Positions 5,705 to 29,500 are shown, counted from the first letter of the stretch. The stretch is DNA of 64,000 bases from Phallusia mammillata (GCA_965637545.1 OZ281496.1:24862001-24926000), one strand, 5' to 3'. The notes: generated from the letters alone by a model not told the origin. Made by a program: numbers and translations.

Positions 5705-8700
5705 TTAGTTTAGCGTTTGCTTCGGCTTGCGTACTGAGTTGGTTTGCATAGAGCTGCTTACAATCGACGCGCGCAAAGAGTCATTTTTTCTTCTGATCGC
5801 ATTCGGCTGGCATTTGAGAACAGCCAGCAAAGGTTGCAACCACATGTTTCTGACTCGGTTTTGTCGGACGCAGTTCACAATGAAGATGAAAATTCCCTGA
5901 AAGTACAATGTGATGAATATTTATTTATTATATGGATACTGTGAACAACGACTGGTAACGCTACAGAATTGATGTGTTGAAATATTTTGTCTCAGTTTTC
6001 GATACCAACGTGCGAGTACCGAGGGCCGATTTACACCATAAGAATACGGACAACTTTATGCCAATATTTGCTTCGGACAGTACAGCATTAAAAAACAGTT
6101 CCGCCAGGTTACTTATATCTTATTCGCTATCATGTGGAGATTACATTTTTTCGGCATGTGTGTATGCACGCCTGTACCCCGACCATGGCAGAAAAATTAG
6201 CCAATGATATACAACTAAGTACAACACTACACTTAAGTACTCGGTAATCGTACTCGGTACTCGGTATCGAAGGTATTTACATGTGGTACTCGCACTCGGT
6301 ATCGGTACTCGCTTCAAAACCTGGTATCGTCCCATCACTAAAAGTTAACCATCTTCATTCGTACCTGGGTGCAGTTGAAAATGGTAAAAAGCCAAGCCAT
6401 AACCGTTTGATAAACAACGTGATCAGCCGCAAGCATAAGAAATCCAAACACCCATGTAAGGCCCATCATAATCAGCAACATCACGGCTATCAAAAAGTCT
6501 TCTCTTCTACTTCTTTGCTTGGCTGTGGATTGAATCTGTAAAAATGTGTGCATACGCAATAGAATTGTTAAATTTTAAATTGGTTGAGTATACAGAAAAC
6601 TTTTAAATTTATCGTACCACTTTCTTGCGACAGGTTAGTTTCTTTATCACCAGGCTGAAGAAAACGATGTTAGCAATTGCCAATGCTCCAATGGGGACCA
6701 AAAAACCATAGTAAAGCGAATACTCATGCAGCCAGCACATGTGCCGCGCACGGTAAGCCGATTGAAAGAATATGTCACCTATGCAAAACAATTGAATCAT
6801 ATATAGCACACTATTGCGTTCTGGCAAAACAACGTTATTTTAAAAACTGAGGTACGTACTAAAATTTGTTGTAACCATATTCACTTTTCAATTGAGATAA
6901 AAATCATCGCAACTCAGCGCATTGTTTGGCGAATTCGTGAAAACTTACCGGGATTTGCGTTTTGATTGTCGAAGTAAAATATTGCCACACATGCGTCGAC
7001 AATCACAATCACAGACGGTGTAACGTACGCTATGATCGTCGGAATGTTGGATGGGGCTTCACCCAGCGTAACCTGTTTACGTATTCGCAACAGTTTACGT
7101 GTAATGTCTTTTAAATATGTGTATTCGCAGCACGCGGGTAAAAATTAAACAGTTTTATATCAGTGTCAGGGCTTCTGATTTTGGGTTGTACGCGGCTCAC
7201 CTGTCCTATGGAAAAATTACTTTGGATAACCGGTACCCATTTGGTAATGCGATGCGCAAGATTAAGATTTTTCATAAAACCACATTACTTTTCCCAAAAA
7301 GAAAAAGTGGGCGTAAAAGCTTAAGAAGCCCTGGCCTAAAAGTTTAATTAAATACGACACAATTGGGTGCCGCCAAACTAGCTTTGAACCGTCAGTTTAG
7401 TTTTTGTAGGTTTTTCGCCTTCGTTACGTTTTGGGGCAAATAAAAGTTGCATACCTTTGCTAGGGCCTTGTACATATTGTGTGCGTTCATTGTCATCCAG
7501 AACCACGCTGCTAGTAAGAAGTAATGTAAAAGTGCGGTGCTGATGTAACAAGCCATGCTGTCTTCGACACGAGACGATCCACTTAAAAAGACGACGTTAG
7601 CCACGAGCAGACACGCACATATGTTTACCAGAAACTTCGTTGTCTGTCGATTTCGGAGTTCTCTGTAAGCGAAAATTTGTGTGTAGGTTTCTATTTTCTC
7701 CTTTTATTGTAAAGATATAACGAATTAATTTTCTAACTTACATAAGTTTAAAGTTAAAGACTATTTAATGGGTGTAGTGTGTGTTTAACATGTGTGGCTG
7801 GCGATATGTATTTTTTCACTCATAACTTAACAAATTATTATCTTCACAAATTAGCGTTATTTGGTAACTTACGTTATTGCAAGATAAATGAGCATCGTCA
7901 GTGAAAATCCAACTATAGACAGCGAACAGCCGATGTAGCTAACGATGCCCAGGATAAAGGCTGAAGGCAAAATCTTTGTACTCTGTGGATTTTAGCAAAT
8001 GTTAAAAAATTTTGTTTCATGATTTAACACCATCACTACGAAAAAGATAGGTTCGAGTGTTTTTATGAAATGTGTAGTCAAACCCACCACTATCATTGAA
8101 AAACTCGCGAGTCGGTAACACTTGCACCGGGGCGGGGAACTTCCAGGAATAAGGGTACATCCGTTAGGTACCCATTTCCCGTCAGCTCGTTGGTATACAC
8201 TGCACTGGGTCCTCGTCACTAAAGACTAACAAACGAAAACAATGCACATGTTTGTCATTGAAAAGAAACTTTTGAATTTTGTCGAAACATCTGAGTAATA
8301 AAATGTAGGTTACTTTAATCATGAGGCTTCAGACACTCAGCATGAGCGATGGAGACAACAGTCGCGTATAATAACAGACAGAAAATTGGGTTCGAAAGTT
8401 AAAAATGTATATACATCAGTACATAAATATACCATAAACAAATGATGAATTGAAAATAAATTGTAGTAATGAAGTCAAATGGTGGAATTTGTTGAGGCTT
8501 ATCAAAGTTTTCAGTCTAGGTAATTAGTTTAAAAGAAATTGAAATAACAGTTTTCCAAAGCAAATTTCGAACCCAAAATATGTATATAGTTTTTGGTATG
8601 TGCCAATCAGGAGTTACCTGTAAGCTTCCGTTTCCAAAAGGATGCTCTCCTTGCCTATCGGTCGTGTTGGAAAATAACAAGTCGATAGCGTTGGTAGTCC

Positions 8701-11700
8701 GTGCGGGATTAAAGCCTCGAATGTTGGCAGATATGACCTGCAGATTAATGTTTTAGTTGACCACAAAACCACTCAGAATACCAAAATTTTTTACTTTGCG
8801 CCAAAATGCATAAATTTAAGGGCTTGTCTGTACTGTTGTTGGAGTTTCTGTAACGACTACAAGCGTTTCTGTACGTTTTTTTGCTGTGTGTGTTGCATAC
8901 AACGAATATTTACGGGTGATGGACATTAATGAAGTGCATTCTTATCAACCAGATTCAGCGTGTATCTCACCAACGGTGGATCTTCCGCTGCTGGAAATAG
9001 CGCCGGACTGCTGTGGAACACAAACGAGGCACGGACTGGTTGAATCGCAGGAACCACGACAGGAGGTTCCGTTTCGACAACCGGAGGCTCAGTTTCCACA
9101 ATTGGTGGATCTACAGTTTGCACTGGAGCTGGAGGATTGGTGTTTCCAACCCCGGGCGTGGACGCAGTTGTGCTGGTCGTTGTGCTCGTAGTGGTACTGG
9201 TGGTTGTGGTCGATGTCGTGGTTGTCGCTTCCATGATGCTGGCCTCAGCTTCGTCCAACAGCAAACCGGGTAAGCTGATTACTACTACTGCGGTCGGGAC
9301 AAACGTTCTAGCAAGCACTTCTCGCCCAGGAGCAAATGTTAAAGGTGAATACGGTGCCTCTGGCGATGCTTTCACGGGCTCGGTGATCTATTAAACAGTG
9401 ACATATGCTGTCATCATTTTTTAGATACGGCATATACCGAGAGAAAAAAACGCTTTAGTTCGTACGGTAATAACACCATTAACACGTAAACAAATGTTCG
9501 CAATTATGATGTATTGGCACGAACAAAATCTTATAAGGATATATTCAAATAACCTGTATTGTTGTTTGAGGCGTTTCCAGAGTTATAGTGTTTGTACCCT
9601 CGGGTAGTGTAACTCTTTGTATAAACTTTTGTAGAGCATCGTATAAAGCTTTCTTTGTCTCCGCGTTAGATCTGCAAGATGTTAGATTTTTGCAAACTTG
9701 AAAAGGCTATAGGGGCAATACTGTGGCTATTTTAACATATTTGGTGCTCAGTGCCCATCAAACCAAAAGAAGTAGCTCTTAAAATGCTCAAAATACTTAC
9801 GTTGTTGTCTCTTCTGCATCGCTGTCATCATAATTGCGGCCACCCAGTTGGTCAATGATGTTTATGACGTCAAAAAGTACGTTCACCGTGATCTAAGATT
9901 GTATTTGTTTAATTACATTCTTGTTTCGAGTTTTCAGTTATACGTATAAGTATGATCACATTTTACAATTTGGTGGAACTGGACTTGCAAAAAAATCTTA
10001 AAAAACATTCTTCTAAATATGTCAACTTTTAATGAAACAATTACGATTCTAGACAACTCTGTGGCGATTTTTACCTCGACTTGATCTTCGTCGCTCTCAA
10101 CAATGGCGATCAATGTTTTTGTGATATTTGCCACACCTTCTTGAGAAACATTGCTCTCAGCAGTTGTCAACAGCTTAAGGCTTGCAACAGTTTCTTTCGC
10201 TTGTTTGGTTGTAATGTTTTCAGTTTTAAACTGAAAGAATTCTTAGAACTTTTAATTTTTGCAAAGTTATGATGGCCTTTTGCAATGAACGCAATAAACC
10301 TACCTCTTGTGTCACTTGGTTTAAATTAGTCTCGCACTCCAAAACGTGTGGTTCGCTAAAATAGGCAAATTCAGGATATGTTTCGTTCCTCAAACAATCA
10401 ATTGATGCTTTCGCCCTGCCTAAAAATACGAAATATGCCTGTACCATAACAGAACATGTCGAAATAATTTTTTAGCCAAGGCATTTGTCTGTCGTTTCAA
10501 AGCTACAAAACCCTTTGTTGATTTGTCTTTTGTTTTAAACATGTGCTGATGTTCCAGTTATGTGTACTCACCTTTTTGGCATGTTTGGACTGACAAAGAT
10601 GTAAGATCTACTCTCGTTCTGTTAAAAGACAGGAAATCTTCTTTTCGGCCGTCGTAAATTGTAATTTCGGCACAATAAACTGGAACAAAAATAACGTTTG
10701 AATCTTTGGACGTTTATTTGGTTTTTGCCTTAATCAGCAGCATACCGTTAGTCGGCAAACTTGGTGGTAAGGCTGGCACGGTTGTTGGGGACGTTTCTAT
10801 AAAACAAAGTTGAAAACAGATCAGTTATCGATGAGTTGGACAAAAGTTTGTAAAATTGCAAATACCTTCTTCTGTTTCCTTCGTGGAATGAAAAGTATCA
10901 TCAGTGTCTATTTCAGGTTTTGTTGTCGTGTTTGTCATTGATTTTGTTTTTGCCTCTGCAGCCGTTGTCATGTGGTGCGTAGAAATGTCTGTAGATGCCA
11001 GTGCCGTCGTTTCCGTAAAAATTGTTAAACCACTGGTTGTCATATGCGATGTTGCGCCGGTTTCTGTGTAAGTTGAGGCGGAATCAGACTTATCCGTTCT
11101 AGTTGTTTTTGCTGGTGTGGTATCGGTATTAGACCCTGAAGTGATTTCATCCATTGCAACTGCAGTAGAACTTTGTAAATTCTCTGCTTTTGGTGTGACA
11201 GTACTATCTGGTCCATTAGTAGCAGAATTTGATCCTTCCATTGTGTCTGTAACTGTCTCGTGCGTATTATCTGTCGTAGGTATAGCACCAGTAGAGTCAA
11301 CCTTGGTTCCCTCCTTTGTAGCTGTTGTTGGTTTAGTATCGGTTGATGAAACGAGTGGATCTTTTGTGTTGGTAACATTCGTTGATTGACCGCTTTTGGC
11401 CAATGTAAAGGCTATCGTCTGTCGAGCAGCATTTGTGGTTCCCAAATTTTCACTGGTACCTAAAGCAAACCGACTTGTTGTAACACCATGCTTTTTTCAA
11501 TATAGGGTGATTTTAACATTTTTTGGGTAATTAAAAGAAATACAGTATAAGCATCGACTAACCTATACCATCTGTTTGTTGTGGCGTAGCATCGTCTACT
11601 GCTTCTGTTGTTACATCCTCGATTCCGTGTGGTGTTAGGTCTTCAGTTTGTTTGGTTGTTGGGTTTAGAGTTGACACTATTAGTAGGGAAGAAGAAGAGG

Positions 11701-14700
11701 TTAGGGGAATTTTAACCTCCGTGATGTGTAGTTTTTTATGATATGGTTGGACAATTTTATGTAACCAAATCCGTTACGTGGGTAAATATTCATGTTACGT
11801 TATTCGTTTCAAATTACTAAGTAACGATTTTTTCAACTGAAGTGAGTGTGATTTTGGGTTTAGTTCTTGCTTTATGCCGTTTACGAATTACATAGGTCTT
11901 CAAAACCGTACTTACGTTGGACTGATTTTTCCTCGGAAGTAGTGCTAATTGCTATTGTCGCTGTGTTGGCTATGGCCAGTGAAGCACTGGTTGCGGCAGG
12001 AGCTTGAATGGTCGTTGGTACCATAGTTGTTAGTGGTTCCACAGTGGTTGTTACCAGTTCAGAGCCTGTTGAATGACTGGTTATTGTTTGTGTCGCTTCA
12101 TTCGTCGAAGTTGGTGCAGATATTGAAACTAGTTCAGTGCTTGAAACTGGTTCTGTGTTTGTTGCCGGTTGTGTGTTTGTAGATTGTGCCTTAGTAGTTT
12201 TTGCTTCTTCAGTGAATGTAACTGTTGTGGTATTTGACATCATTTCAGTACCTGTAGATGGTGTGATGGTTGTCACCAGTTCTGTGATTACAAAATGCTT
12301 TAAGTTTGAAAATGAATATTTGTGTCGGAAATGGTCGTTTCTATTTAAATTGTTAAACTATTCAAATACAACGCCGATTTTTTCCTTGTTTCTGCATAAC
12401 TGTTTTATTAAAACAATGATTTAAAGTCAGTTATGATGGTGTATAAAAGCAAAGCAAAGTTGTTTCTACCCCCAAAAGTCAGACGTCACCATCAGTTTGA
12501 TTTTCTACACCGCACGCGTTTTAACAAACAGTTTACTACTGAAAAAGGAAAAAAAATAAACGCTAGTTTACCTGCACCAGCCGTTTGTGCTGTGGCATAC
12601 TCAGTTGTCTTTGTGGTCACTTCTTCGTTTACTTGTGTCGTTGTACCTGCAGTTTGTATTGTGGTTAGGTTAACGGCCTGTATTACCGCATAACATATTG
12701 TGTTAGAATAAAATTATTGAATTATTTTCACCTCAAGGGAATTGTTTTTGTTTAACCATAAATAAAGCAATGTTGGTTGAGGTTTTCTGTTTAATTATAT
12801 ATATTTTATTGTTTTTTGAAGACAACAAACTTTAAACTGGCGGTTTTCCCCCGCTATAAACGTAACATGGATGGACAGAATAGACATATTTCAACTTTAG
12901 TTACATTTTATATTAACCCGTCGGTTTACCAATAGTTGCTGTGTATTTGGTTTGCAAGTTGGTTGATACAGCTCTTTTCTTGTCCGTTCGTGTTATCTGT
13001 AATACGAATCCCCAGACACGCTTTACTAGGATGGCCACGTCGTAAGTGTGTGTATGTGTCCCTATGATCTCAACATCGATGTTGTCTATCGGGTAACTTA
13101 AACAGGCCTCGAACTCCACGTTGACCTGTATTTCTGGGTCAGCTGTGGTGGATATGTTTTGATATCCTTCTAGCACGCTGACTAAAAAAATAGAAAAGTA
13201 CGTTGCCAGTATTCAACAGTATTGATTTTTTCCTGTCGAAAATGTTTACAAATAACAACATTCATTTACAGCTTAGTTAGAAATTGTTCGGCATTCTAAG
13301 TTACTTGTACACTGAAAACTTGTTTCTCGCATTGCTAATTTATTTCCATAAAACATAATTACCAAATTTTAAACAACACACACGATTGCTTACTATTGCT
13401 TCGCCTTTCACACACTAGGCCCTTGCTTTTTCCACAGCCTTCTGTAAACCATTGGCCATTGTTTAGTACGACGCAATTTTTATCAGCAGCAGTGCTGTTC
13501 GATTCCGATTTGCCAAATCGTGACTCGCTTGGCAACAATGGAGTTCCGTCTATCCACGTAAAGTTGCTGAAAGTTTCCGTTAAATCGAAAAGTCCAATCC
13601 AAAGTTCCACGTGAGTATCTGTTGGTGTTGTTTCAGTTATATTTTGAAACATTAGCAGCATGAGCTCAAAACGAATTTTTGACATAATCTGTATTCAGTA
13701 ATTCTTGTAATAGTTGTAATGGCAACATTTTCTTATAAAAGTTGTATCAAAGTTAAATCAACATTGCTCAATTTCGCACCTTTCGTATTAACCAGGTTAT
13801 TTATGAAGTTTGATGTATAGTTGCTTTTCACCATTGCAAGTGTCGCATTGAATCGCTGGCATTCGTTTTGAGCCTCTTCGAACTCGAAGCTTGCCGTCCC
13901 ATGTATGAAGTATTCGGTCGGTCCGCACCCGTACCACTTATCTTCTGCAAAAATACATTTTTTACATTTCCAATACCTTCGGTTTGCGCCTTTCAATTCC
14001 ATGTTATCAGTTTACAAATTTTTAAATCCAGTTAACCTTTGCTACCATTTTTTTTGTTTACGGTACATTTTTATAAAATTTGGTTTGAAAAGTTTCGAAA
14101 TCACATTTAGTGCAATTAGCAGTTGAAACTCTAATGAACCTGTAAATTGTGCTTACCGACATATGGTGCTGAAGTGGTGGTCACCAGTTTATACCTTGCG
14201 GAGGTTGACACTAGCTCAGTGGTTGTTTCTCCCAGGGTTGTTGCTGTTTTAGCGTTTGTTGGTGTTGAGGTGCTTTTCACCAGTTTAGTGGTTGTTTCTG
14301 GTGCCGTGGTTGTCTGAGGTTCAGTGGTTGTTTCCAGTTCAATTGTTGTATCTGGTACCGTTTTCGTGGTCTGTTCAGTGATTGAAACTGATGCTGTGGT
14401 TGTATCTAGTTCAATGGTTGTTGCTGGCACCGTGGTTGGCACTAGTTTATTAGTTGTATCTGGTACTGTTTTCGTCGCCTGTTCATTGCTTGTGGCTGGT
14501 GCGGTGGTTGTTGTTTCAGGAGTTGTATCGGGTAATGTGGTTGTCACAACATCAACGCTTGTCGCTGGTACTATGGTTGTCACTATTTTAGTGGTTGCAT
14601 CTGGTTCTGCGGTTGTCAACAGTCCAACACTTGTCGCTGATGCCATGGTTGTCACCATTTCAGTGGTTGGAACTGGTTCTGCGGTTGTCACTAGTTCAAC

Positions 14701-17700
14701 GCTTGTCACTGGTGCTGTAGTTGTTAATATTTTAGTGGTTATATCTGGTTCTGTGGTTGTCACCAGTCCAACGCTTGTCACTGGTGCTGTAGTTGTTAAT
14801 ATTTCAGTGGTTGTATCGGGAACTGTGGTTGTCACCAGTTCAACGCTTGTCGCTGGTGTTGTGGTTGTAACAAGTTTGGTATTTGCAAACTCCGTGGAAG
14901 TTGGAAACACTCTCGTTGTTTCCGATACCGTCGTTACGTAATCTGTTGTCCTGTCCGCGGTCGTTTCTGCGCAAATGACTTGTATTATAATATTTTTTTT
15001 TCAATAGTGGTACTAGACATTTCTCTAAAACTGTTATGTTTCCTGCAGCTGCTAAATACAGTATTTCCTTCAATTTGCTTTTTAATATTAAAAATGTTTT
15101 TGTAGTATTTCAATTAAAAAAAAATCATGTATGCAACATGTATTTGTGGAAAAATAAAATTTAGTTACCTGCATGTGTCGCTGGTCGTGTTGAGGCACCG
15201 GTGGTTTGTTTTGTGGTTACTTGGGTAGTTTCATGTGGTGTTGTGTCGGTATTTTGTTTTGTCGTTGGTTGCGTAGTTGGTGCTACCATATCACCTGTTT
15301 TAAAATGTAGTATTTTTCTTTATATACACTCAGACGTAAATTTTACGTTTTTTTGTTTTGTTTTGGAAGTCGTAAATCGATTTACTGCCATAAAAAAAAC
15401 ACCACGAGAGAACTGTCTTTATGGAATTATTAAGATTTTTTTATTTTTCGATATGTAATAGTAGTAATTTGATTTTTTAAATGGACTTACTTAGATAGGC
15501 TTTCCATTTAATCTGTAACATTGTGGAGAACCCTGGTTCGTCGTCAGTTCTAGTCAAGTTTAATGCGAATCCCCAAACATGCTTTGCCACAATGTCCAAA
15601 CTATAAGTGTAATTGGTGTCCATTTGAACCTCAACTTGTATGTCGCCAATAGCATAACTTAGACAGGCCTCATACTCCACATTGACTTCTATGGAGCGGT
15701 TAGCACTGCCGGAAATGCGCTGACATCCTTCCAGTACGCTGACTTAATACAGTAGAAAGTTTCGTTAATTGTCTTTTTGTCCAAAACAAATGTGCAACTT
15801 ATACGTTCTTAACCATATGGCTTCAACGATAGTGCAACTGACGCTGTTTTAAATGTCTTTAATTTATTACCTTTGTTATACCCTGAAAACTTGTTTACGT
15901 ATGTATAAATGGTTTATTCTCATTAAAGTTGCTGCTTACTCAATACTTAACGTTTAACATTACTTACTATTGCTCGGCCGTTCACACACCAGGCCTCTGG
16001 TAAACTTGCAGTGTCTTGAAAGCCAACCTTCCGGCTTAAGCAGCAAACATAACTCTTTCGTATCATTATGGAGCCAGTTTCCGAAGAATCGTGACTCGCT
16101 GGGAAGCAGAGGACTTCCGTCTATCCACATAAAACTATTTCCTATTCCAGTTGGGTCTATAAGCCCAATCCACATGCCGCTGGAAACATCTGATGAAGAA
16201 AACGGATAAACTGTATTAATTCAATTTAAGTCTATTACCAGTTTGCCAATTATGTTTTTACGCCAGATTTCTTGATGAATAAGAAACCCGACCTAGTTCC
16301 CATAATTTCTGCTCTTACCTTCAACCACAGTTAGGTTTTTTAAGAATTGTGATGTGTAGCTGCTTTTTATCACTGCAAGGGTTGCATTGAATTTTGCGCA
16401 TTGGTTTCGCGCCTGGTAGAAGTCGAAACCCTTGTGTGTGTATATTAGGTATTCGGTTGGTCCACATCCATACCACTTATCTTCTGCAAAAGAATGCACC
16501 AATTAAACCAACTTGTTGCCGTAACCAAAACTGAAACTAGCTAGGTTATATGGGTTGTGTATATTTTTGACCTCTGCATAAATTGCCTATGTTATAGTAA
16601 ACTGAAGCTTTACACTTACAACCAGGAAGATTCCTGTATAAGCTCAGTTTTATGATTGTCTATGTTGTTTCAAAAGATAATGATTTCGGTAACGTGTTTT
16701 TTTATATATAAAGGATAATCCCATGAACGAAAGCAGTAACAGTTTATGATGGACACACAAAATTCTCGTATGCACAACAGACACTAATGTGAAGTTGTTT
16801 TTAGGACTTTTTTCTCTAAGTGGGATATTTTAGCGACTGAGCAGATTTTGTTGGTAAAACTGTCTGTTACCCTTGCAAGTGTTTGTAAACAATTTTATTC
16901 TAAAACGGACTTTGTTGTAGCTGTTATATAAATCCACCCGGCCTATCAAATGCGACATATCGAAATCAATCACATTTTGTCCGTATGTCTAATGCAGTGG
17001 TTCTCAAACTTTTTTGTTGTCGGGACCAAATGGTAGTTTTTTAAGTGTGTAGGGAGCCGCAAAAAAACGAAACATTGAGAAAATCACTAAACATTATGAC
17101 TTTGAAAGCTAAAATACCAATGTTTGGTGGTTTTCTGAGGTCTGGTGCGAGCCGCAAAATAAGTAGTTTGGAGCCGTATGCGGCCCCGAAATCCGAGTTT
17201 GAGAACCACTGGTGTAATGGCTGATGTCATGAAAGAATATGTGTTCATCTCAGATGGTGTAACTTTTTAACGTTTTGTTAAATCAACTTTTTTGACTTTC
17301 ATGGGATAGGATTTTCAAGTTGTTACAGTTAAGATCACAATTATTTGCCTTTTTGTGTAACAAATGTTAATTAATTCATGTGAAACGTTTTTTTCACGTT
17401 TCCACAAACAATGTCGTTATCAGTATGGATTTTGTACTGAAAACAAGTTGAAATTTTCATCGAAAGTTGAGGCTTTTTGTTCATTAAATGATAAATTGGA
17501 TAGAGATAACCCAATTGGGCTTCTAAATTAGATTACACAATTAGAGTCTTACCAATGGGAGGGTTTGTCGCCAAGGCCATGCTTGTTACTGGTGGTGTAG
17601 TGGTTTCCAGTGATGCGGTGGATGCTACAAGTGAGGTTGTTGCTTTTGCGGTGGTTGCAATTGGCATTGTGCTTATTGCTTGTGCAGTGGTAACCGCTGG

Positions 17701-20700
17701 TGTTGAGAGGGTCGTTAATGCTAGCAGAAAAAAGCTTAAATTGTTTTCAATTTACAAATTACTTACAGATAAAAACTTACAGTTTGATTGGAACTACTAC
17801 AACTGATTGCAAAAAGCTTGTGTGTTATGTTAGTTGCATATAGTATATCGATTACCTACAACTTACTGAATATCCTCTTCCACTTAAGTACCAGTTTTGT
17901 TGGGAAGTCCAATCGGTCGTCAGTGCGCGTTATGTTCAATTCAAAACCCCAAAAATGCGTAGCTACGACTGTTAGGTCGTACGTAAAAGTGTGATCATAA
18001 GAAATTGTCACATTTATGTCGTATGGCATGTTGGTTTGACAGGTCTCAAAAGCCACGTATGTTGTTACTTTTCGGTCGGCTGTAGCTGTTATCCCTGTGC
18101 ATCCACGCAAGACGGTAGCTGCATATAAGAATCAAGAATATCTTGAGGTTTCAAAACAACTAAAATGGCTTACATTCTTGACATAACAACTGCAAAACAA
18201 GCGGTCGTATAATTTTGTTTTAAATTACTCACTGTTGCGTTGTCTTTGGCACACATAACTTTTCAAGTGAGTACATCTGTTTGACTGCCATTGGGCCGTT
18301 TCGAATAAAAATATAACACAGTCTCTTGATGCTCCATTGTTGTTGAGGGGATTTCCACCCTCAAACCGCCATTCGCTGGTTATCAGCGGACTTCCATCAA
18401 CCCACATAAAGTTTTCAGCTGTACCAGTTACATCTTCCAAGCCGATCCAAGCACTGGAGTAACCTTCGGTTAAAAAATGAAAAATATCTTTTACTAATAT
18501 GCGCTTTGGTGTATTACAAAGCCCAATCGACTTCAAGGGGAAGGGGAGTTTTAGTGGGTACTTATGACCCAAAAAATTAACAACATTTTGTTCAAGTTTG
18601 TAATAAAATGTATCTTTTTTGTTAAAAATATTTAGAACTAACTTTTTAGCCAGGTCAAGGAATCATTTATGATACTCAAAATATACAAAACACGGATATT
18701 ACTAAACTGCAAAACTTCTACGAAATAGTTATGAAGACCTTTTACCTAAATGGGTAAAGATGTATTGTATAAACTTTGATGTGTAGTCGTTTCTTATTGT
18801 AGCAAGCGTTCCACCAAATGTCTCGCACTTAAGGCGAGCTTCGTCGTACGACAAGCCTGGTTGATTCTGTACTAGATACTCGGTCAGGCCACATGGGTAC
18901 CACTTTTCCTCTGCGTTAAAATGAAGTAATCTTGTATTTGAAACTGGATTTGTTGTTTCAGAAAACATTTTTTTCATTTCTTTACCTGATATGCGTGGTA
19001 TCATAGAAGTATTGGTTGGCGTTTGAGTTTGGGTTGTTGTGGGTGGTGTAATTATCGCTGGTATTGTTGTTTCTGTTGTTGTTGCTGGTGCAGTCGTTTC
19101 CGCTGGTTTTGTGGTAACCGCTGGTGTACTGATGGCTTCGAATGCTGAGGAAAAGAAAACTGATTAAATGCACAGTTATAAGGGGTGATTCGTGACAATA
19201 TAATAAATCAACCTAGCCTCTACTTGTCGTTTGTGTTTATTTGGATTAGTTATTCTTTGTAAATAAGACTGTACAATGCTACTATTAACTGGTACTTACT
19301 AAACGTTCTTGTCCACTTGATTAGCAAGCTAGTTGGGAAATCCGATCGATGGTCGGTTCGCGTCAGGTTTATTTCGAAACCCCAGTCATACGTAGCTACG
19401 ACCGCCCAATCGTAAGCAAAATTACTGTGGTAGGAAATTGTCACATTAATGCCATACGGGTCGTCACTTGTACAACTCTGAAATTCAACTTCGACTGTTG
19501 TTGTTTGGTCAGCGGTAGTTGTTATGTTTGCACATCCATGCGAAACGCTAGCTGTAGAAAAAAGAGAAAATTTACAAGACGATAGAGTTTAAAAACAAGT
19601 ATAAATGTTCGGTTGTAATTTTTGTAAATTTTATAAATGTTCGGTTGTAAAAAAAAAATTAAGTAATTTTTATTTCACAATATATGCTTTTTCGGGGGCT
19701 TTGTTAGGTTACTTACTTTGAATTTGTCGTTGGCACACAAAACCTCTTGGAAAATCGCATCGTCGTACAAGCCATCCATATTCATTTGAATGCAAAACAC
19801 AGTCTTCCTCCTTTCCGTTAGCATTCGTCGGTTCGTCTCCTTCAAACTTTGACTCGATTGGCAGCAATAGACCACCATCAATCCATTTGAAGTTTTGAGT
19901 GTTACCAGATGCCGATTTTAATCCAATCCAAATATTTTTGTCAAATTCGTCTTTAAATAATAGTACAACGTATTACTTCATGGTTATTACGTTAGGATGC
20001 AGCTTTGGTGATGATTTCAGTAATGAGTACATGTACATTGTTGTTGAACTTTTAGTCATAGAATCATCCAAATGTTTTTCTCTTACTAAGTCAGGATAGT
20101 TGACACTAGAAGAACTATAAGTATGCGGCATGTATAGTTGAAGCTAAAACGTAAGTTATGATAGGAAAAAAACACTTGATTTGCACATTTGTGATGATAT
20201 ATAATTTTACGACTACAGCCGCTGCAATTGCCTATTTGTTGTACCGTTCTAAATGAAGATTAAATGGATTATTATAAAGGTTACGGTTACAGAGCTGATT
20301 CTGGAACACACTAGTTGTGATTTCTTCAAGTTCGATTACGGTTCAAACAAATTCCATTTTGTTTTTGTTTTGAGCTACTCTTGCACTTATGTGCCCTGTG
20401 TAAAGGTTGTGTCTAATTCACTATCTATCAAAAAGTAGACCACCCGGAAAGACCACTGTCGTGAGTTCGAATCCCACTGCAGGCTAGTTTTTTCTAGCTT
20501 ACGCATTGCCACATGGTCATGCTTGGTGGCCGCCTATTTCGGAATAACGCCTAAAATGGGGCTGGAGTACTGTGGTTTGTATATGAGTGTGCCGTGGTCG
20601 CTGGTGTACATATAGATACTTCACGGCTGATCCCAGTTATTAATTTATTTATGTACATCTTAACTGAATTATAAGATGCTGTACAGTACCATCAAGGCCT

Positions 20701-23700
20701 TGGATGTAGTTTATAAATTCGGACGTGTAGTTTTTCTTCAGAATTGCAAGGGTTGCGTTGAATGTCTCGCACTCAACCCGAGCTTCGTTGAAATTAAAGT
20801 TATGCTCATTATGCACCAAATACTCTTGTAAACCGCACTGGTACCACTTATCGTCTGCAATTAAAAGAGTGTATTATTCGATTGAATGTCACTGGTACAA
20901 AAATATTTTTTGTTTATTTTGAACCCCAACAAAAGTTCGATGTTGTTGTTATGACAGAACAAACCAGATATTTACCAACAATTGGTGGTGCAGCCGTCAT
21001 TGCTGGAGTTATGCCTAAAAAATTAAGCTAAGTTTGTTTGCTGTCTATTCTATGTGAAACAAACCTTATTTGCAAAACAATTCTTATCTTTAAAAACGCG
21101 TGAAAATACTGTAGTATCCAGTTTGAAAAAACGAAATTGAGTATTTAGTGTCTTTTTTACCCCAACATAATTATATTCAATGATAAATCATATTTTTTAT
21201 CAAACGTACCTGATATATTTAATCTCTGACAAATAAAGCCTCTCGGATGAAAGCAACCTCTAGAAAGCAATCGGCCATTTTGAGATAATGCTCCACAATT
21301 TTTCGCTTCTTCGTTTGTGTTTAATGGTTCCGGAGATACAAAACCTAGTTCGCTTTCTGATAATGGAGTTCCATCTAACCAGGTGAAGTTGGTTGTCGTT
21401 CCTGTGTTGTCTTGCAAACCGATCCATGGATGTTGAAATCGTTTTGCTGTTGGTTCAAGAGCATTTTGTATCATAAATACCATCAATGCAGCAATGGTTT
21501 TAGACTTTGGATTAGATATTTCGTGAAAGGTTGTTTTGTATTTTGAAAGTTGGATGGTTTGAAGAAAGCCATCACACTGCTTTTATTACAGTTTTGTCAA
21601 AGACTTTTATAATTAACAAACAAACAAACTTTTGGTCAAGTTTAAACCAACGTGTTTAACTGATGTATAGATGCGTAGCTTTTTTCCCCTGCTTTGAACA
21701 TAACATTTGTTGGAACTTTCTGCTAAGTTTTGAAATATTAAACATGTAAGTAATTTTGGTGTGCAATTTCAACAAGCGAAATTTTTGCACTTACTTCTAA
21801 AATCAGATGAAGTAAGAAAATTTGCGGTTTCATTGTTTCGTACGATGGCCAGAGATGCATTGTATGCTTCACACATCTTTCGAGCTTCGTCAAAGGAGTA
21901 GTTCGTGTTTTCATTTATCAAAAACTCGTAGTGACCAAATTGATACCATTTTTCAACTGCAAAAATATTCTACCACTTTATTCCATTCTAACTAATTTAT
22001 TTTATTTTACACAAACAATCTGATTTTATACATTATTATTTTAAAATAATTAGTATATTTTGTTTGTATTGGTTCATTATTCTATTCAAATATGATTGCA
22101 AATTGTAAAAAGTCTGTATTTAACGCAAAAGGTAATAATTCGTAATTTTTCGACATGTTGCAAGCTTATATAAAAGCAGACTTAGTTGTTGTTCAATACT
22201 TACCAAACGGCGGAGGCGGCTGAAAACCTACAACATAAAAATGACATTAATTAAAAGAAAACTAAATAAACTTCATTTTTAAATTTATGATAAAGCAACG
22301 AATGCTCGACACTTAAGTGTTGTGTACAAATTGTTTACAGCGTGCTTTCTTTGCATATGATACTGGCAACGTGGTATAAAAGCATAGAATATTCTGTCAA
22401 ATACCAGTATCGTAACCTTTCAAGCGATAGCGATTGTTGGCCAGTTCCACTCAGGTGTAGGAATAAGAAATAACTCTTACTGTAATACGCCGCCCATTTG
22501 ATCTGCGCATTGGACGGTGTTCCTGAAATGCTGTCCATTCTTATTACTAGTACATCAAATCCCCAATAGTAGATGTTCATTAACAGAGCTTCATATGTGT
22601 AACCGCCTTCAGCGATGACAAACACATCAACTGATTGCGGAGTATCAATGACGCATGTGCGAAAACGCACTGACACTATTGTAGTGTACTCCGTGCTGTT
22701 ATAGTCCTGACAACCACTGATGATATCTTTGGACACAAATGAATGTATTTAGGGCAGTTTTAAATGCAAAAAAAGTGATGCCCTACTTTACATTTTACTA
22801 TAAGCAATTTTTTTTGCTTACTTTGCTTCTTCTTTGGCAGTGTAAAATGTAGTGAATATGCACCGCTGTTATATAGTTGTGTACATGGTAAAAGTTACTG
22901 TTTTGGGCCTTTTTTAATTTGCGAAGTAAGCGATTTTCAGCATTTGATACTGGGATAAAATCATAGCGTTCTTGATTAGTTTGTTTACGCCCAAAATTGG
23001 CACTAATGTATACGAGTCATCGTTCAAATCGAAATAATACAACAATTTGAAATAGTAGAACAAAGGCCAGAGCAAACAAACCTGTCTGGTTCGTAGCCCT
23101 TTCGCAAATAAAACCTCTTCGCTGGAAGCATTGTCTAGAACTTAATTGTCCGCTATGGGACATCAGCACACAATCCACGTATGGATGATCTAAGTTAATT
23201 GGTTCCGGGGGCACAAACTTTGGTTCGCTTTCTTGAAACGAGCTTCCGTCAGGCCAGAAAAATTCGTTTGAATCTTCACCTTGGTTCCGCAGTCCTATCC
23301 ACGCGTTTACAGATGTTTCTGTGTAACATCAGATGTTGCTTGTCACATTGAATTGCAGTAAAACGTAAATTGCAATCTATGTTCATAATATCGTTTAACT
23401 CATCACTTTAAAATATATAACATGATCTCATTTATAAATATGTAAACTTGTTACTTGGTATCTCAAATATATCACAAATGTCTCGAGGACTATTTTGCGG
23501 GAAAAAAATCCTTTACATAATCAAACTAACAATATGCTTAATATGTTACTTGTGATACCTGCCAAAATGCCGAGCGAAGTAAGAAACATCACCGTTTCGT
23601 TTGTTCGTAGGAAAGCCAATGTGCCACCAAAACCTTCACAAACACTCTCAGCTTCTTCATACTTGTGATCATGGCCGGTATGAATTAGGAACTCGTTCCT

Positions 23701-23900
23701 GCCGCATTGATTCCATACTTCCACTGCATTAAAAACATCAGTTACTATAACGTAAGTTGCAGAAAATAAGGCGCATTTTTGCAGTATGGAGAAATTTTTC
23801 TATTCTGTCACAAATTGTTAATGCCAGGTTACATCCATCCCGAATTTCATTGATCTTTGCCCCAAATAGACCTTAACATCCGGGTAAATTTCTCCAAATA

Positions 23901-23937
<37 letters not shown>

Positions 23938-25304
23938 CAAGTGCAACACATAAACGTTTTGCAATTTTACTTACCTATCGGCTTAGGAGTTGCGACGAAA
24001 TCTATATTAAAAAAGACAAAGTTAAAATTAACAACTAAACCACAAACGGTTGATATATATTTTCAAACTGCACTTCTGTATTGGAATTAGTTACACTATT
24101 CGATGTTATCGTGTGTTTACCGATTCTTAAACCAACTACATGACTATATAGTGTTGTTAAATCCCTAATCACAATGCCATCTATGATTTATTTTGTGATG
24201 TGTTTCAGATTGCTACGCTGGTTTCTCCGGTTTTCCGAAAAAGTTATGAAACGTTTGCTTCTCAATGATATGTACAATTTTGGTTGAGAAAAAAAGATGA
24301 AAATCAACTTACCGAATTCCGCTGTCCAGTTTAGAAATATATCTGATTCATTCCACGATGGGTAAGTTTCTTGTTTGTTTTTTGTCTCAACCGATACCGT
24401 AATTCCACATCGGGTACTGCTAAGTAAATTTGCGGTGAGAGAATTTACCCGCATCTCATTGCCGTACAAATTCAAGGTAACGTTAATGGAGTTTTCTCCG
24501 TAACATTTGTCATAAGGAATCCAGAACGTTCGCGGCGAGGTTGTGTGTCCCGCGAAAGGTCCGACTTGTATAGTCCCGCTTAATTCTACAATGTTCTTGT
24601 TTGAAATTTTCGTTTATGATCCTCATGCAAAATGAACATGGCTTACCTTCAGGTAGCTGTGATGTGGTTGAAGCCGTTGTGTAACTGGTGTTGTTGTTTT
24701 TCGAATCTTAGAGAGAAAAAATTTGTTTATTAAATCTTTAACGAACGATTTTGTTGTTAAAGTTTTGTCACATGTGAGAGTCGCAGCGAGTTGCTTTTTT
24801 GCCAAACGACAGTTTTTTCCTGTTAAGATTTATTGTACAATCATTAAATGGAATACTTACCATAATATGCGCTCCAACTGATTGTTGGTCCATCAGCTGA
24901 CCACCAACGGTGTTGAAGTATATCGGTCATCCCGCCATAAACTTCCAGTGTAAACCCACAGTTATCACGACTTACAACTTTGTTTGTAAATGTAATGTTA
25001 TCTGCTAATGTCTCACTTCGTTCCATTCCAATCACAAAACGGTCTGGAGGGTTTTGCAAACAAGGCGATTGGTTGTATTTGACGTAAAACGTTTGAGGGT
25101 GTGTTAAATGTCCAGAAAAGGTTTCGGTTTCAAAACAGCCTCTTGCAACTGAAGCTAAAATAGAAGGAAGGTTATAAACACAGTCGATTTGGGTGGTTTA
25201 ATCCTATAATCAGTCGTATTTTACCAGTTGTACATACCATTTTGAGCTTCAGCCCGCAAGAAACTTGCTTCAAGGAATATCACAATTAATATCGTCCTTA
25301 TCAT
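5705..25304 (-). CDS. Adhesion GPCR 'A', about 47 exons, about 3000 aa: signal peptide, X-X-CTL-X-CTL-CTL-X-CTL-X-CTL-X-mucin-CTL-X, mucin stalk, HormR-like, GAIN/GPS, 7TM
   Basis: Exons (minus strand, GT-AG): SP 25304-25238 (MIRTILIVIFLEASFLRAEAQN); X 25154-24861; 24706-24647; X 24585-24313; 24001-23975; CTL 23723-23559 + 23318-23082; X 22726-22481; (22219-22204?); CTL 21956-21795 + 21446-21210; 21014-20976; CTL 20854-20690 + 19950-19717; X 19551-19300; 19144-18986; CTL 18910-18746 + 18463-18233; X 18118-17867; 17720-17553; CTL 16483-16319 + 16189-15968; X 15742-15491; 15294-15169; 14966-14157; CTL 13944-13780 + 13618-13394; X 13181-12930; mucin 12646-12572, 12281-11916, 11676-11569, 11459-10866, 10796-10746; HormR 10679-10572, 10419-10304; GAIN 10230-10075, 9892-9801, 9671-9554, 9387-8971, 8737-8618, 8225-8088; 7TM 7982-7873, 7662-7455, 7072-6949, 6778-6618, 6535-6365, 5896-5705. 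Family-2 GPCR motifs MCWL, MGLTWVFGF, FNCTQGIFIF. Confidence 0.9.
5998..6340. mobile_element. Truncated hAT-like element remnant in the last intron of A
   Basis: Right end ...GGTATCGTCCCATCACTA (TAGTGATGGG-type terminus) with repeated ggtactcg/ggtatcg subterminal motifs; no matching left end found. Confidence 0.45.
14157..14966 (-). repeat. Mucin exon of receptor A with about 5 tandem 24-aa (72-bp) repeats
   Basis: TSVELVTTTVPDTTTEILTTTAPV / TSVGLVTTTEPDITTKILTTTAPV / TSVELVTTAEPVPTTEMVTTMASA / TSVGLLTTAEPDATTKIVTTIVPA / TSVDVVTTTLPDTTPETTTTAPA. Confidence 0.9.
16995..17211. mobile_element. hAT (Charlie-like) MITE, 217 bp, in an intron of A
   Basis: 16-bp perfect terminal inverted repeat CAGTGGTTCTCAAACT; 8-bp flanks gtctaatg / gtgtaatg (7/8 match). 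Confidence 0.9.
20393..20650 (+). mobile_element. Possible tRNA-derived SINE remnant in an intron of A
   Basis: Pol III B-box-like GAGTTCGAATCCC at 20463-20475 in a GC-richer patch ending in an AT-rich tail; no convincing A box or TSD. Confidence 0.4.
23902..23936 (+). repeat. (ATT)n microsatellite
   Basis: About 11-12 perfect ATT units in an intron of A. Confidence 0.95.
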
Positions 25305-26516
25305 TTTCTATGATTAGTTTTATTGTACAAACAATTTTTTTCCATATTCAATTCGCTCTAAACAATATTAAAATCTCAGTAATTCCCAAAATGCTACATA
25401 AGTTGTTATTGTATGTACTGCGGTGTAAAAAAAATTTGGTTTTACTGAACTCAAATAAGTTTTCTCTAAATATAAAACTGCCAAGAAAAAATAATGCAAG
25501 CTGTCAATCTTTTTTGTTCAAAATCAAAAGACAAAGTTTAGCTTCCAACAAAATTTCCAAGCAAAACTGATTGTCAAGTATCTCTTTGTTTAAAATTGAA
25601 ACCCCTGTGTTTTACACAAACCTACTGACCTTTTAGTAATTTTACTTTTGTTTTTTTGGGTTTTGTGCGCATTTTAATGTGATTCATCGAGCACGGGTAT
25701 CGATCGACGCGAAACTGAATTGTGACGTAAAGGAAGTGAAATAGGCAACTTTATTAATCTATTGTTTCGATTTTTTCGCTCAGCTAAGTCATAGTACCAT
25801 TGACTTGGTCATTCCTGTGGCAGCTTTCATCCCAACCTATATCCTGTAAAGTTGCTTAGTTGTGTTCATTGCACAACCAATACACACATCAAGTCTATGA
25901 ACAATCTTTGCTCAGAACAGAAGTGTCGTATGGTATAAATAAACGGCCTTGGTTATAAATGCAATTAATTAAAAATACAGTGTTAGACATTCCTAAGAGC
26001 ATTTAAGTAGTGCTTCTTCAAATTTTCATTTATGAAACTGATGACAAGTGTAATTTTTGTTTTAAGTAAGTGCAATAATTTTCGAATCCCTTCATTAGAT
26101 CGCGCTACCAAAAAGCAGTGATTTCATCTGCATAAAATTTAATTATAGTTTTGCATCAGCAGAGCATGCATCACTCGATTTACGTGTTACCTTTATTGTG
26201 CGCATATGTATTTACAAAACAAAACACAATGTAATACGTGCACGAAAACACTAATTGATTAGCTTTATATTTACACTATCGTATGGGCAATTTCATTCTC
26301 CGCGACCAATAACCTTGAGGCTATATCCACTAAAATAAGACCATCTACTTCCCTTTTTTGTTCATGATTTTGCGCTATGAAAAATCTAATCTATGTATAA
26401 AAACCACAATCGCTTCTGTATACTGTACAAGCGTTCATTGCTCATTAAACACTAGCGCGACAAAAGTCTCTTTTAGTCTATTAAATGTCCATTCAGTCTT
26501 TAAAGTCTGATGAAAC

Positions 26517-29500
26517 TTAAGCCTTTGCTTTGCTTGTGAGTCTGCTTGTTTCCATTTCAATGGATAAGGAGCCACTTCGTCTTGCCATTCGACAGGCAAG
26601 GCATGCGAGCAATGGTCCACACCACATCTTACGCACTCGCTCTTGGCGCACGCAGTTCAGCAGGAAGATAATAAATCCCTAAAAGACAAACAAACTTGTA
26701 GTTTTTGAACCTATTGTGGATTGAATTTGTTGGTTTGGGGTATCGAACAACACATACAGACTTTTTTTTATATTTTGTTATATTTCGAGTGACGATCCCT
26801 TACGTTAATCTCACAGCTTCGACCAAATCCTTATTACTGTTATTTTTCCGGTCACGTCTAAAACTGCGGGCCCACTTGGATCACTTGGCCCGCTTGGCCC
26901 GCTTGGCCCAGCACTTGGCCCGCCTCATGCAATTGGAAAACTGCGGGCCCGCTTCTTGCAAGTATAAAAATTGTAGCCCCACTATATATCCAGTGCTTGG
27001 CCCGCCTCTCGTATCGAAAAACCGCGGGCCCACTATATCCTGTGCTTGTCGCGTCTATCGCAAGGAAAAACTGCGGGCCCACTACATCTATTGCTTGCCG
27101 TTCAGATCTTGTCGAAATCAAAATTTAATGACATGTGACAGGCGTGTCCACGGCTTTATCAAGCCGGCCCGCAGTTTTTATACTTGCATGAGGCGGGCCA
27201 AGTGCTGGGCCTAGCGGGCCCGCAGTTTCAGACGTGACCCTTATTTTTCGACTCAATTTGTTAACCAAAGGATGATGACCTTTAGATGTTTCATCGTTAT
27301 GTCTTATTCTCATACTTGAGCTGAATTGAGGATTGTGAAAAACCACGACAATATTTCTTGAGAAGTCGTTGTGTCCGCTATAAGCATGAAAAATGCGAAG
27401 ACCCAAGTCAGACCCATCATAAGGAAGATAGCCACAGCAACCAAAATCTCATCAAATGGGCTTCGGTCTTGGGCGGTGGATTGAATCTAAAAATGAAATT
27501 GCTGATTTATTTTTGTTGTCAGATAATATCAAAAACAGGGTTTCTTTCGGTGGTTTACTTTGTCTGTCGAACCCCACTTTCTTTCCTATAACGCGTGTGG
27601 TCAGTTTATACCCCCCCTCGATTGGTTCCACTAACGTCTCCCTTCCAGTCGTGTTATGCTCACAGCGCGCCAAACATTTTCTGGTGAGCTCCTGTCACAT
27701 AACGCTTTATAATATTGTGTAGCTGCAGCGCGTTTAATTATGATCCACTAATTGTGCCATCCACTTTTTGCGCCCCATAACGTCTTCACGTTGCGCAGCT
27801 ATTTCCAACTTGATGATTGTTCAATGCAATTGTGTCGGTATTTGTCCATAATACCGTGACATTGCATAACTACTGGCATATAATTTTTTGTTTTGTCATT
27901 TTTAAATGTTCGAGGTTTAATTTGCAGCTATCAGGAGATTTTGCTGGACAAGAGTAAAGCTACTACGAGTCACTAAAAACACAGTACTGTGATTTGACGA
28001 GAGCATTGTGGTGCTTGAACCATTTTACACACTATTTAATACAGCTTTCATAACACCCTAATGCCCACTTAAGATTCATGTGTCTATGTTCTTTATCACC
28101 TAAACTTACTTTTGATTTTTTGCAGGTTATATGATAGATCACCAAAACAAACATAATTATGTTGAATATGCACAAGATTCCAACGGGAAGCAGAAATCCG
28201 TAATATAAGGAGTTCCAGTGCAGCCAGCACATGTGAAATGCTTTATATGCTGATTCAAAGTATGGGTCGTCTAAAAAAAAGTTAGTTTTTTATCTGCTTT
28301 TTTCGGTGCAAATTGTAAAAAAATCTTAGTTTTACCTGCTCGGTAGTTTTTCATGTCGTAAACGAAGATTGTTACTCCGGCGTTAACGCCTACGATCAGA
28401 AAAGGAGTCATGTACGACAAAAGGCATGGAATCGTACTGGAAGAGTTACCTAAGCGCGCGACCTGACAACAAAAACAACTTATAAAAAATATAAAAGCCC
28501 CTTTTTCTAAGAATTTTTGAAACCATAGAATTAATATCATAAGACCTAATAAGAAACAGAGTTGTTTTCCAACAGCTCATCCATTTAATACCGTTTGCTT
28601 TTTGTGACACAATGTACTCACCCTTGACAAAGCCTTGTACAAATTATAAGCGTTTGCGCTCATCCAAAAGAAGGTCGCTAGCAAGAAATACTGTAGGAAT
28701 GCAGTAAATAGGTAGCAGGCCACTCTGTCTCTTACGAAACCAATTCCAGCGATGAACAGAACGTCCGCCAAGAGAAGGTTAAAACAAATGTTGAGTAGAA
28801 ATACGGTTGGTTGTCGTTTGCGAAGTTCCCTGCAAAAAGATATATTGCAGACATAACATACAAATGTACTTGACGGCCACAAGCAGGCGTACAGATTTAC
28901 AGACCCCTTGGTCATTTTTATTTGTCCGAATGGTGCGGTATGCCTGTGTTCATAGACACAAAAACCTGATGCGGATATGTACTCGGTACCGTCCTGGGTT
29001 CAAAACTCGTGAAAGAACTGGTTGTCGTTTATAGGGTTTTAAAATTATACGTTGTTTCTTCTTTCTATTTATTTGCGATCTAGCATTGCAGGTCTTAGCG
29101 TTTATTTACGTAATTTGACACAGCATGGGCCACTCTGACCATTCAGTTCACGAACCTATATATTTATGGTGGAGATAAGGGTAAGCTGCGTTCGCAAAGT
29201 GCACCAAGCTTTTAAAAGATCATGTGTCACTCTATTTTGAGGGTAACAGTGCGAGGAAACGGTGTATGATGCTTCTCGGGCCGCAAACTTCTGTGAGCAT
29301 CCGCTCATTATATTACTGTTGGGTATGTTTCAGTCAAGTACAGACCATTGCTCCTAATGCCGGAACATAAATTAGCAATTCTAGGTACCGGGTCCCGTAA
29401 CCAATCGGTCCAAACTATACTGTTTCTTTGCCTTACATGAAGGAGTGAACTATTCACAATAAAAAAGAATTGGTCAACGAAAACCCTGCTACGTTAATCC

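Follow-up and report, generated by a model that had tools for sequence, protein, structure and literature searches.

Does the long series of lectin-like exons in a 64,000-nucleotide (nt) stretch of the ascidian Phallusia mammillata genome (GCA_965637545.1 OZ281496.1:24862001-24926000; the window) form the extracellular part of one seven-transmembrane (7TM) receptor, and what is X, the recurring exon that accompanies its C-type lectin domains (CTLDs)? The series belongs to a locus that we call gene A. An earlier note, made from the window alone, had described it as repeated cassettes of linker, CTL-a, CTL-b and X exons on a long mucin stalk. We consider it likely, with some reserve, that gene A is one intact, transcribed adhesion G-protein-coupled receptor (GPCR) gene, with an ectodomain of six CTLDs and seven H-type-lectin-like (HTL) domains on mucin spacers, a GAIN/GPS region and a 7TM domain. 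The gene structure, the domain identities and the RNA junctions that link the last cassette with the 7TM region are documented below. The window is free of N runs and sits on a 32-Mb contig of the 240-Mb genome.

AG/GT borders were placed on each open segment, and the exons were searched and folded one by one. The resulting model runs on the minus strand from 25304 to 5705 in about 45 exons and ~3,010 codons, open throughout, with an ectodomain of ~2,690 amino acids (aa). From the ATG to the exon for transmembrane (TM) helices 2 and 3, phase arithmetic with a local script gave 41 exons and 2,799 codons with zero stops, canonical splice sites and consistent phases. The last four exons (TM4 onward), for whose borders several GT donors are possible, contribute ~215 codons. 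Between the last exon of the upstream paralogue, gene B (~26520), and the first X-like exon, Xn1, only the ATG of exon 1 is followed by a hydrophobic stretch and a GT donor in phase 1. From 5' to 3' the predicted order is a signal peptide, two N-terminal X-like domains, six CTLDs, linkers and mucin, a GPS and a secretin-type 7TM domain.

The exon sizes given in the earlier note (162-165 nt for CTL-a, 222-237 nt for CTL-b and 246-252 nt for X) were confirmed for minus-strand exons that have AG/GT borders and are in phase 1-1, as are all ectodomain exons from Xn1 through 10572. Its estimate of about 2,300 aa for the ectodomain is close to the 2,254 stop-free codons from the ATG at 25304 to 10866, and the latter position coincides exactly with an RNA-supported exon border. 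There are six a-b exon pairs, five of which are followed by X. The single cassette said to lack X is cassette 2: a search between 21210 and 20854 (b2 to a3) with a model from five X copies found neither an X exon nor a remnant. The four-exon description fits four of the six cassettes: 3-6 each have a Thr/Pro-rich linker exon in front, and cassettes 1 and 2 have no linker. Two additional X-like exons (294 and 252 nt) upstream of cassette 1 bring the count to six CTLDs and seven X copies, which agrees with the thirteen modules proposed.

RNA evidence came from four small runs of one study, which contain 36-40% of the window's sequence words and whose contigs were mapped to 7395-13394; two other sequencing runs contain the whole stretch and are DNA-like. 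The contigs leave out 15 intervals, each bounded by CT..AC in plus-strand sequence and hence by GT..AG on the minus strand, and therefore represent spliced RNA of a minus-strand gene. Their junctions chain the TM2-TM3 exon (7455-7662), the TM1 exon (7873-7982), the GPS exon (8088-8225), six GAIN-region exons, six stalk exons (10572-12646) and X6 (12930-13181). Loose contig ends extend this chain past 13181 to the 3' end of b6 (13394-13423) and below 7455 to 7072, in the TM4 exon; one contig of 1,792 nt spans 9153-12123. Because spliced contigs link b6 and X6 with the stalk, GAIN, GPS and TM1-TM3 exons, the last cassette (b6, X6) belongs to the receptor mRNA. For this cassette, the possibility that the lectin array is a separate secreted gene, raised at the outset as a refutation, fails. 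Combinatorial isoforms had also been suggested; the uniform phase 1-1 permits them, but every junction occurred in a single form, and neither alternative junctions nor skipping of symmetric stalk exons appeared in the 6 kb covered by the contigs, which can hide rare forms. In three of the four runs, contigs depart from the gene at 7438 and 13149 into sequence outside the window; these branches could stem from paralogues whose transcripts are identical to those of gene A over short stretches, or from unseen alternative exons.

The membrane-proximal exons are predicted to encode an adhesion GPCR (class B2), as both 7tm_2 and a GPS before TM1 are present. Three exons cover complementary parts of 7tm_2 (PF00002), with 43.2, 20.2 and 24.7 bits. 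The GPS (PF01825) scored 27.2 bits (cutoff 22.5), and RNA contigs join its exon to that of TM1. The GAIN exons upstream of the GPS, searched singly, gave no Pfam match. In the array, the two halves of Pfam Lectin_C are matched by the a exons (positions 2-37) and the b exons (positions 36-107), and all six b exons singly exceed the gathering score (30.8-43.6 bits; cutoff 22.6). In the alignment, WIGL occurs in 6/6 b exons, and the four core cysteines are in place: a has one, in its helix, and b has the other three.

The earlier note had left X unnamed. On the grounds of its predicted fold, its structure matches and its profile links to H_lectin, we identify X as a divergent H-type lectin domain, so that gene A carries six CTLDs and seven H-type modules. 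The AlphaFold model of X5 is a six-stranded sandwich (predicted local distance difference test, pLDDT, 92.3), and that of Xn2 has six strands in the same topology (pLDDT 88.7). Foldseek returned the Helix pomatia and Helix aspersa agglutinins, coral SLL-2 and gp53-like phage and pyocin fibre knobs as the best solved matches of X5, and the top 14 solved matches were all of the H-type/gp53-like fold. Overall, the best solved matches had Z scores of 8.3-10.1 and root-mean-square deviations of 1.9-2.5 Å over 80/83 residues. Upon re-alignment, X5 gave Z 9.1 (2.3 Å, 80/83 residues) against Helix pomatia agglutinin, Z 10.1 against the R1 pyocin knob and Z 8.5-8.8 against discoidins I and II, with unrelated folds well lower. 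The R1 pyocin knob and Helix pomatia agglutinin were also the top Foldseek matches of Xn2 (template-modelling score 0.70). The language-model look-alikes of Xn1 were H_lectin clusters (score 0.94), and a search of the ESM Atlas with X found H_lectin and gp53-like clusters at template-modelling scores of 0.72-0.83, including one H_lectin cluster at 0.80.

At the sequence level, X was aligned from 12 copies in the window: gene A supplied seven, and its paralogues B, D and E the other five. The resulting profile found only 44 proteins at E <= 0.001 among 1.84 billion, the best of them ascidian (Phallusia, Clavelina and Ciona); the top match is a Phallusia protein (P0001) auto-named 'CD97 antigen-like'. 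Many of these proteins have an above-threshold Pfam H_lectin domain where X matches (X versus H_lectin: 86-164 and 101-151 in P0011; 546-623 and 561-624 in P0033; 27-109 and 48-92 in P0022). The link from X to PF09458 is thus transitive, running through proteins whose matched stretch is PF09458, and is joined by an hhalign profile-profile comparison (99% probability). Across ascidian copies, the X family has a nearly invariant Gly-Phe ... Arg-x-Asp signature. Three candidate relatives, P0003 (MBG repeats), P0013 (Sushi repeats) and P0040 (bacterial Ig-like), were dismissed as compositional or repeat artefacts. X-like stretches also occur between EGF domains in a 717-aa P. mammillata 'Notch precursor' (P0002).

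The mucin-type segments are long, repeat-containing and Cys-poor, with 43-56% Ser/Thr/Pro over ~850 aa in total, and these spacers are presumably O-glycosylated. The mucin placed on the stalk by the earlier note is present, and a second block, in an 822-nt exon, lies inside the array between cassettes 5 and 6, where a 72-nt (24-aa) tandem repeat occurs in 6.9 copies. One long block, between cassettes 5 and 6, measures ~315 aa, and the other, which precedes the GAIN region, ~395 aa. A mucin-like insert, consisting of a Thr/Ser run and Pro/Val/Glu repeats, is also found near the membrane, in the GAIN-region exon 8971-9387 (minus strand).

At the GPS cleavage position, gene A has Arg-Leu/Ala, whereas the consensus is His-Leu/Ser-or-Thr. 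In paralogues B, D and E, too, position +1 is Ala, and position -2 is not His. The GPS motifs of A, B, D and E (7995-8225, 30145-30312, 47245-47496 and 57484-57945, minus strand) all end in Leu-Ala-Ser-Phe-Ser-Met-Ile-Val-Val, and the peptide after the site is strictly conserved across the four. Since its GPS lacks both the catalytic His and the Ser/Thr nucleophile, the gene A receptor probably stays in one piece, uncleaved; because none of the four motifs has His before Leu, the whole local receptor family looks uncleavable. Uncleaved adhesion-GPCR members are known, so departure from the autoproteolysis consensus is compatible with membership of the family.

The description of the copies as strongly diverged holds: within gene A they are 23-57% identical in protein. 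DNA-level alignments between copies cover exons only, not introns, at 68-76% identity. The low identity and the restriction of DNA alignment to exons indicate that the duplications are old. The per-domain phylogeny proposed for ordering them was run as separate maximum-likelihood exon trees, with all rows kept. Only three pairings received moderate support, a1+a2 (88/90), b1+b2 (84/89) and X5+X6 (84/96), and beyond these pairs the trees did not resolve the order of duplication; identities additionally pair cassettes 3 and 4 in a and X. The pattern fits growth of the array by duplication of whole CTLD-HTL cassettes.

Among the paralogues, E has a single a-b-X cassette at its head; B and D lack CTLDs and carry two X-like exons apiece. 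Searching the genome with the X profile revealed at least 136 X-like exons. One regular array of them lies at C3:24,976,390-25,017,414, 50-91 kb past the window end; its 2,349-bp unit with about five exons recurs in eight or more copies (lag identity 0.63), and a P. mammillata protein (P0006) matches it at 81-88%. A second cluster of ~45 X-like exons on both strands occupies C5:18.18-18.31 Mb, with smaller groups on C8 and C2. In Ciona intestinalis, a predicted protein of 189 aa (P0037, XP_018667397.1) joins a signal peptide to a single X domain and the leading half of a CTLD. It probably represents an incomplete model of a related gene, and its order of signal peptide, X and CTLD start means that the X/CTLD pair is not confined to P. 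mammillata.

We propose that the mucin segments would keep the 13 lectin-fold modules well away from the membrane and present them as one multivalent array. Such an array could bind repetitive ligands by low-affinity avidity, for example glycans on cells, particles or microbes. An uncleaved receptor would signal without shedding an outer fragment, and force or conformational change would pass through the intact GAIN domain to the 7TM domain. Ligand type, avidity, lack of cleavage and signalling are points that we infer. A more specific scheme, which we hold to be fairly improbable as a whole, would make each CTLD-HTL pair a composite binding unit. Assembly would proceed via the H-type domains, which form trimers in known lectins, the array would sense how repetitive glycans are spaced on microbes or on adjacent cells, and clustering driven by ligand would activate the uncleavable GAIN-7TM part; the receptor would then be a chordate pattern-recognition lectin wired to G-protein signalling.

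Several results weigh against this picture of a single glycan-binding receptor. A Pfam scan of the seven X and X-like copies of gene A gave no match at E up to 1, which is why X was identified by fold and profile. Sequence searches of solved structures with the X profile, with a profile of X relatives and with a relative that has a strong H_lectin match yielded nothing significant. Known H-type lectins bind sugar at trimer interfaces, an arrangement not obviously possible for single domains along one chain. The alignment of the six CTLDs contains no EPN or QPD triplet, having EPIN, EPLN, EPTN, NPLN or nothing comparable in its place, and no WND motif, there being no Asn-Asp after the conserved Trp; because these motifs are missing, canonical calcium-dependent sugar binding by the CTLDs appears unlikely. 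The non-cleavage reading rests on two residues only. The RNA support consists of overlapping short contigs from one study rather than a single long molecule, and the upstream ~1,700 codons, comprising cassettes 1-5 and the two N-terminal domains, share the receptor mRNA in the gene model only. Word searches of proteins with exons b2 and X4 found no fragments, a result uninformative either way.

Some of these points bear on function alone. The gene may be as modelled while its lectin-fold modules serve not as sugar binders but in protein-protein adhesion or as rigid spacers, for example in cell-cell contact or in self/non-self recognition. The missing CTLD sugar motifs, together with the trimer-interface site of known H-type lectins, make such a protein-binding or purely structural role a credible alternative, though we think it rather unlikely. 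Many CTLDs do serve as protein-binding modules, X is only 10-17% identical to sugar-binding H-type lectins in structural alignments, and in the fibres of phages and pyocins the same fold forms knobs that trimerise or bind receptors; the strong divergence among the gene A copies points the same way. The near-invariance of the X signature in ascidians argues for sugar binding, however, as do the X relatives that exceed the Pfam H_lectin threshold and the combination of two lectin folds with mucin spacers, which is typical of glycan-binding receptors, although none of these is decisive.

Other points concern whether there is one product. Cassettes 1-5 and the mid-array mucin could be made mostly as a secreted poly-lectin, with a shorter receptor from an internal promoter near cassette 6. 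RNA support, from contigs mapped up to 13394, reaches b6, the 822-nt mucin exon divides the array into five cassettes and one, and the Ciona protein described above suggests that short secreted forms of the module pair may exist. We nevertheless regard two products as quite improbable: from 25304 to 10572 there is no stop codon, second signal-peptide-like exon or phase break, phase 1-1 exons need a dedicated first exon to start a protein, and a contig from X6 into b6 runs on for 159-179 nt without ending. That the array is a decaying product of duplication, a pseudogene or a set of unused exons, is very improbable, as, despite the X lost from one cassette, there are zero stops in the whole coding sequence and all splice sites are intact, protein similarity is kept between copies whose DNA identity is 68-76% or below detection, and the 3' half of gene A is expressed in four runs.

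Our preferred reading, a single adhesion-GPCR gene with an array of CTLDs and HTL domains, corresponds to the exons in Table 1. Upstream, the last exons of gene B (26438-27486, minus strand) end ~1.1 kb before the gene A start codon, leaving a short intergenic or promoter region (25305-26437) between the two genes. Downstream of gene A, a 200-codon open frame at 4002-4601 (minus strand) is Cys/His-rich and, as an impression only, has the look of a transposase-type DNA-binding sequence.

Table 1. Exons of gene A from 5' to 3', in window coordinates, with the basis of each assignment
Feature	Position	Strand	Basis and remarks
Exon 1, ATG and hydrophobic signal-peptide-like stretch, 67 nt, phase-1 end	25238-25304	-	predicted
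Xn1, N-terminal H-type-lectin-like, 294 nt	24861-25154	-	alternative acceptors 25148, 25139; H_lectin language-model look-alikes; no Pfam match
Short Thr/Ser linker, 60 nt	24647-24706	-	predicted
Xn2, second N-terminal H-type-lectin-like, 252 nt	24313-24564	-	alternative acceptor 24585; AlphaFold and Foldseek
CTL-a1, 165 nt	23559-23723	-	Lectin_C profile positions 3-34
CTL-b1, 237 nt	23082-23318	-	Lectin_C 33.9 bits, profile positions 38-107
X1, 246 nt, H-type-lectin-like	22481-22726	-	borders, X alignment
CTL-a2, 162 nt	21795-21956	-	Lectin_C 25.3 bits
CTL-b2, 237 nt, no X after	21210-21446	-	Lectin_C 34.5 bits
Short Pro/Thr linker, 39 nt	20976-21014	-	predicted
CTL-a3, 165 nt	20690-20854	-	borders, Lectin_C
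CTL-b3, 234 nt	19717-19950	-	Lectin_C 34.5 bits
X3, 252 nt	19300-19551	-	borders, X alignment
Linker, 159 nt, 56% Ser/Thr/Pro	18986-19144	-	composition
CTL-a4, 165 nt	18746-18910	-	borders, Lectin_C
CTL-b4, 231 nt	18233-18463	-	Lectin_C 40.0 bits
X4, 252 nt	17867-18118	-	borders, X alignment
Linker, 168 nt, 51% Ser/Thr/Pro	17553-17720	-	composition
CTL-a5, 165 nt	16319-16483	-	borders, Lectin_C
CTL-b5, 222 nt	15968-16189	-	Lectin_C 30.8 bits
X5, 252 nt, copy chosen for folding	15491-15742	-	AlphaFold pLDDT 92.3, six strands
Linker, 126 nt	15169-15294	-	predicted, composition
Mid-array mucin, 822 nt, 273 aa, 98 Thr	14157-14978	-	alternative acceptor 14966; 72-nt tandem repeats
CTL-a6, 165 nt	13780-13944	-	Lectin_C 23.2 bits, profile positions 4-37
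CTL-b6, 225 nt	13394-13618	-	Lectin_C 43.6 bits; RNA contigs enter 3' end
X6, 252 nt	12930-13181	-	RNA, four runs; junctions 13181/13394 and 12646/12930
Stalk linker, 75 nt	12572-12646	-	RNA junctions
Stalk mucin, 366 nt, 48% Ser/Thr/Pro	11916-12281	-	RNA junctions, composition
Stalk exon, 114 nt	11563-11676	-	RNA junctions
Stalk mucin, 594 nt, 43% Ser/Thr/Pro	10866-11459	-	RNA junctions, composition
Stalk exon, 51 nt, Pro/Thr-rich	10746-10796	-	RNA junctions
First non-mucin juxtamembrane exon, 108 nt, two Cys, last phase 1-1	10572-10679	-	RNA junctions
GAIN-region exon	10304-10419	-	RNA junctions
GAIN-region exon	10075-10230	-	RNA junctions
GAIN-region exon	9801-9892	-	RNA junctions
GAIN-region exon	9554-9671	-	RNA junctions
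GAIN-region exon with Thr/Ser run and short Pro/Val/Glu repeat	8971-9387	-	RNA junctions
GAIN-region exon	8618-8737	-	RNA junctions
GPS-motif exon	8088-8225	-	Pfam GPS 27.2 bits, RNA junctions
TM1 exon	7873-7982	-	RNA junctions
TM2-TM3 exon	7455-7662	-	Pfam 7tm_2 43.2 bits; junction 7662/7873; loose end to 7072
TM4 exon	6949-7072	-	start RNA-supported, end predicted
TM5 exon	6618-6778	-	borders predicted (6621 possible); 7tm_2 20.2 bits
TM6 exon	6350-6535	-	borders predicted (6365 possible); 7tm_2 24.7 bits
TM7, cytoplasmic tail and stop codon	5705-5896	-	predicted

Adhesion GPCRs are the least understood large class of GPCRs, and most are without known ligands. Modular, lineage-specific ectodomains are expected in this class. 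Glycans are the class of ligand suggested by an ectodomain that consists almost entirely of two lectin folds with mucin spacers. Gene A further provides a natural example of a very long ectodomain carried by a GAIN domain that probably cannot be cleaved, which bears on whether the outer fragment must be shed for such receptors to signal. In full-text literature searches, we found no paper linking H-type lectins to adhesion GPCRs in animals, or to ascidians, and the alternation of CTLDs and H-type-lectin-like domains on an adhesion GPCR was not found described in the literature searched. The vertebrate latrophilins (ADGRL; rhamnose-binding/SUEL-type lectin and olfactomedin domains) and the amphioxus adhesion GPCRs have a secretin-like 7TM domain after a GPS/GAIN region and a long, modular N-terminus with lectin folds, as gene A does in the model, and all are lineage-specific domain combinations built by exon shuffling. 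Gene A differs from them in its thirteen lectin-fold modules of two alternating kinds, in its GPS without the cleavage residues and in its length of ~3,000 aa. Amphioxus adhesion GPCRs carry Lectin C-type domains (PMC2246102), and in a 2008 survey of Ciona, 21 of 24 unclassified adhesion receptors had only GPS domains (PMC2396169).

X, according to its predicted model, shares the ~85-residue six-stranded beta-sandwich of the H-type lectins (PF09458), among them Helix pomatia agglutinin, coral SLL-2 and the C-terminal domains of the Dictyostelium discoidins, which the model matches at Z 8.3-9.1. Known H-type lectins are small, soluble, trimeric binders of N-acetylgalactosamine (GalNAc), whereas X falls below the Pfam threshold, is strung along the chain of a membrane receptor and is hugely expanded in the genome. 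H-type lectins are described as poorly characterised and as not expanded in molluscs or brachiopods (PMC8878817). The fold, usually seen as a small family of snails, corals and slime moulds, serves here as a much-expanded building unit of surface receptors in a chordate group, the ascidians, an expansion invisible to Pfam-based annotation.

Two further groups of receptors resemble gene A in part. The mannose receptor family of vertebrate type I receptors (MRC1, DEC-205, PLA2R and Endo180) has tandem arrays of 8-10 CTLDs, most without sugar-binding motifs, and multivalent recognition. Unlike gene A, these receptors are single-pass and endocytic and have no H-type domains, mucin spacers or G-protein-coupled output. 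The EGF-TM7 group (CD97/ADGRE5 and EMR) shares with gene A the placing of binding modules on a Ser/Thr-rich stalk above GAIN-7TM, and its genes, like the gene A family, form tandem clusters that swap heads. In the EGF-TM7 group the heads are EGF domains and the GPS is cleaved; by contrast, gene A has lectin-fold heads, mucin also inside the array and a GPS that is probably uncleavable.

A further comparison is provided by the neighbouring H-type-lectin adhesion GPCRs 50-90 kb away on the same contig, which share with gene A both the domain family and the kind of receptor. These neighbours have up to ~83 near-identical HTL exons and no CTLDs, whereas gene A has few, old and diverged copies that alternate with CTLDs.

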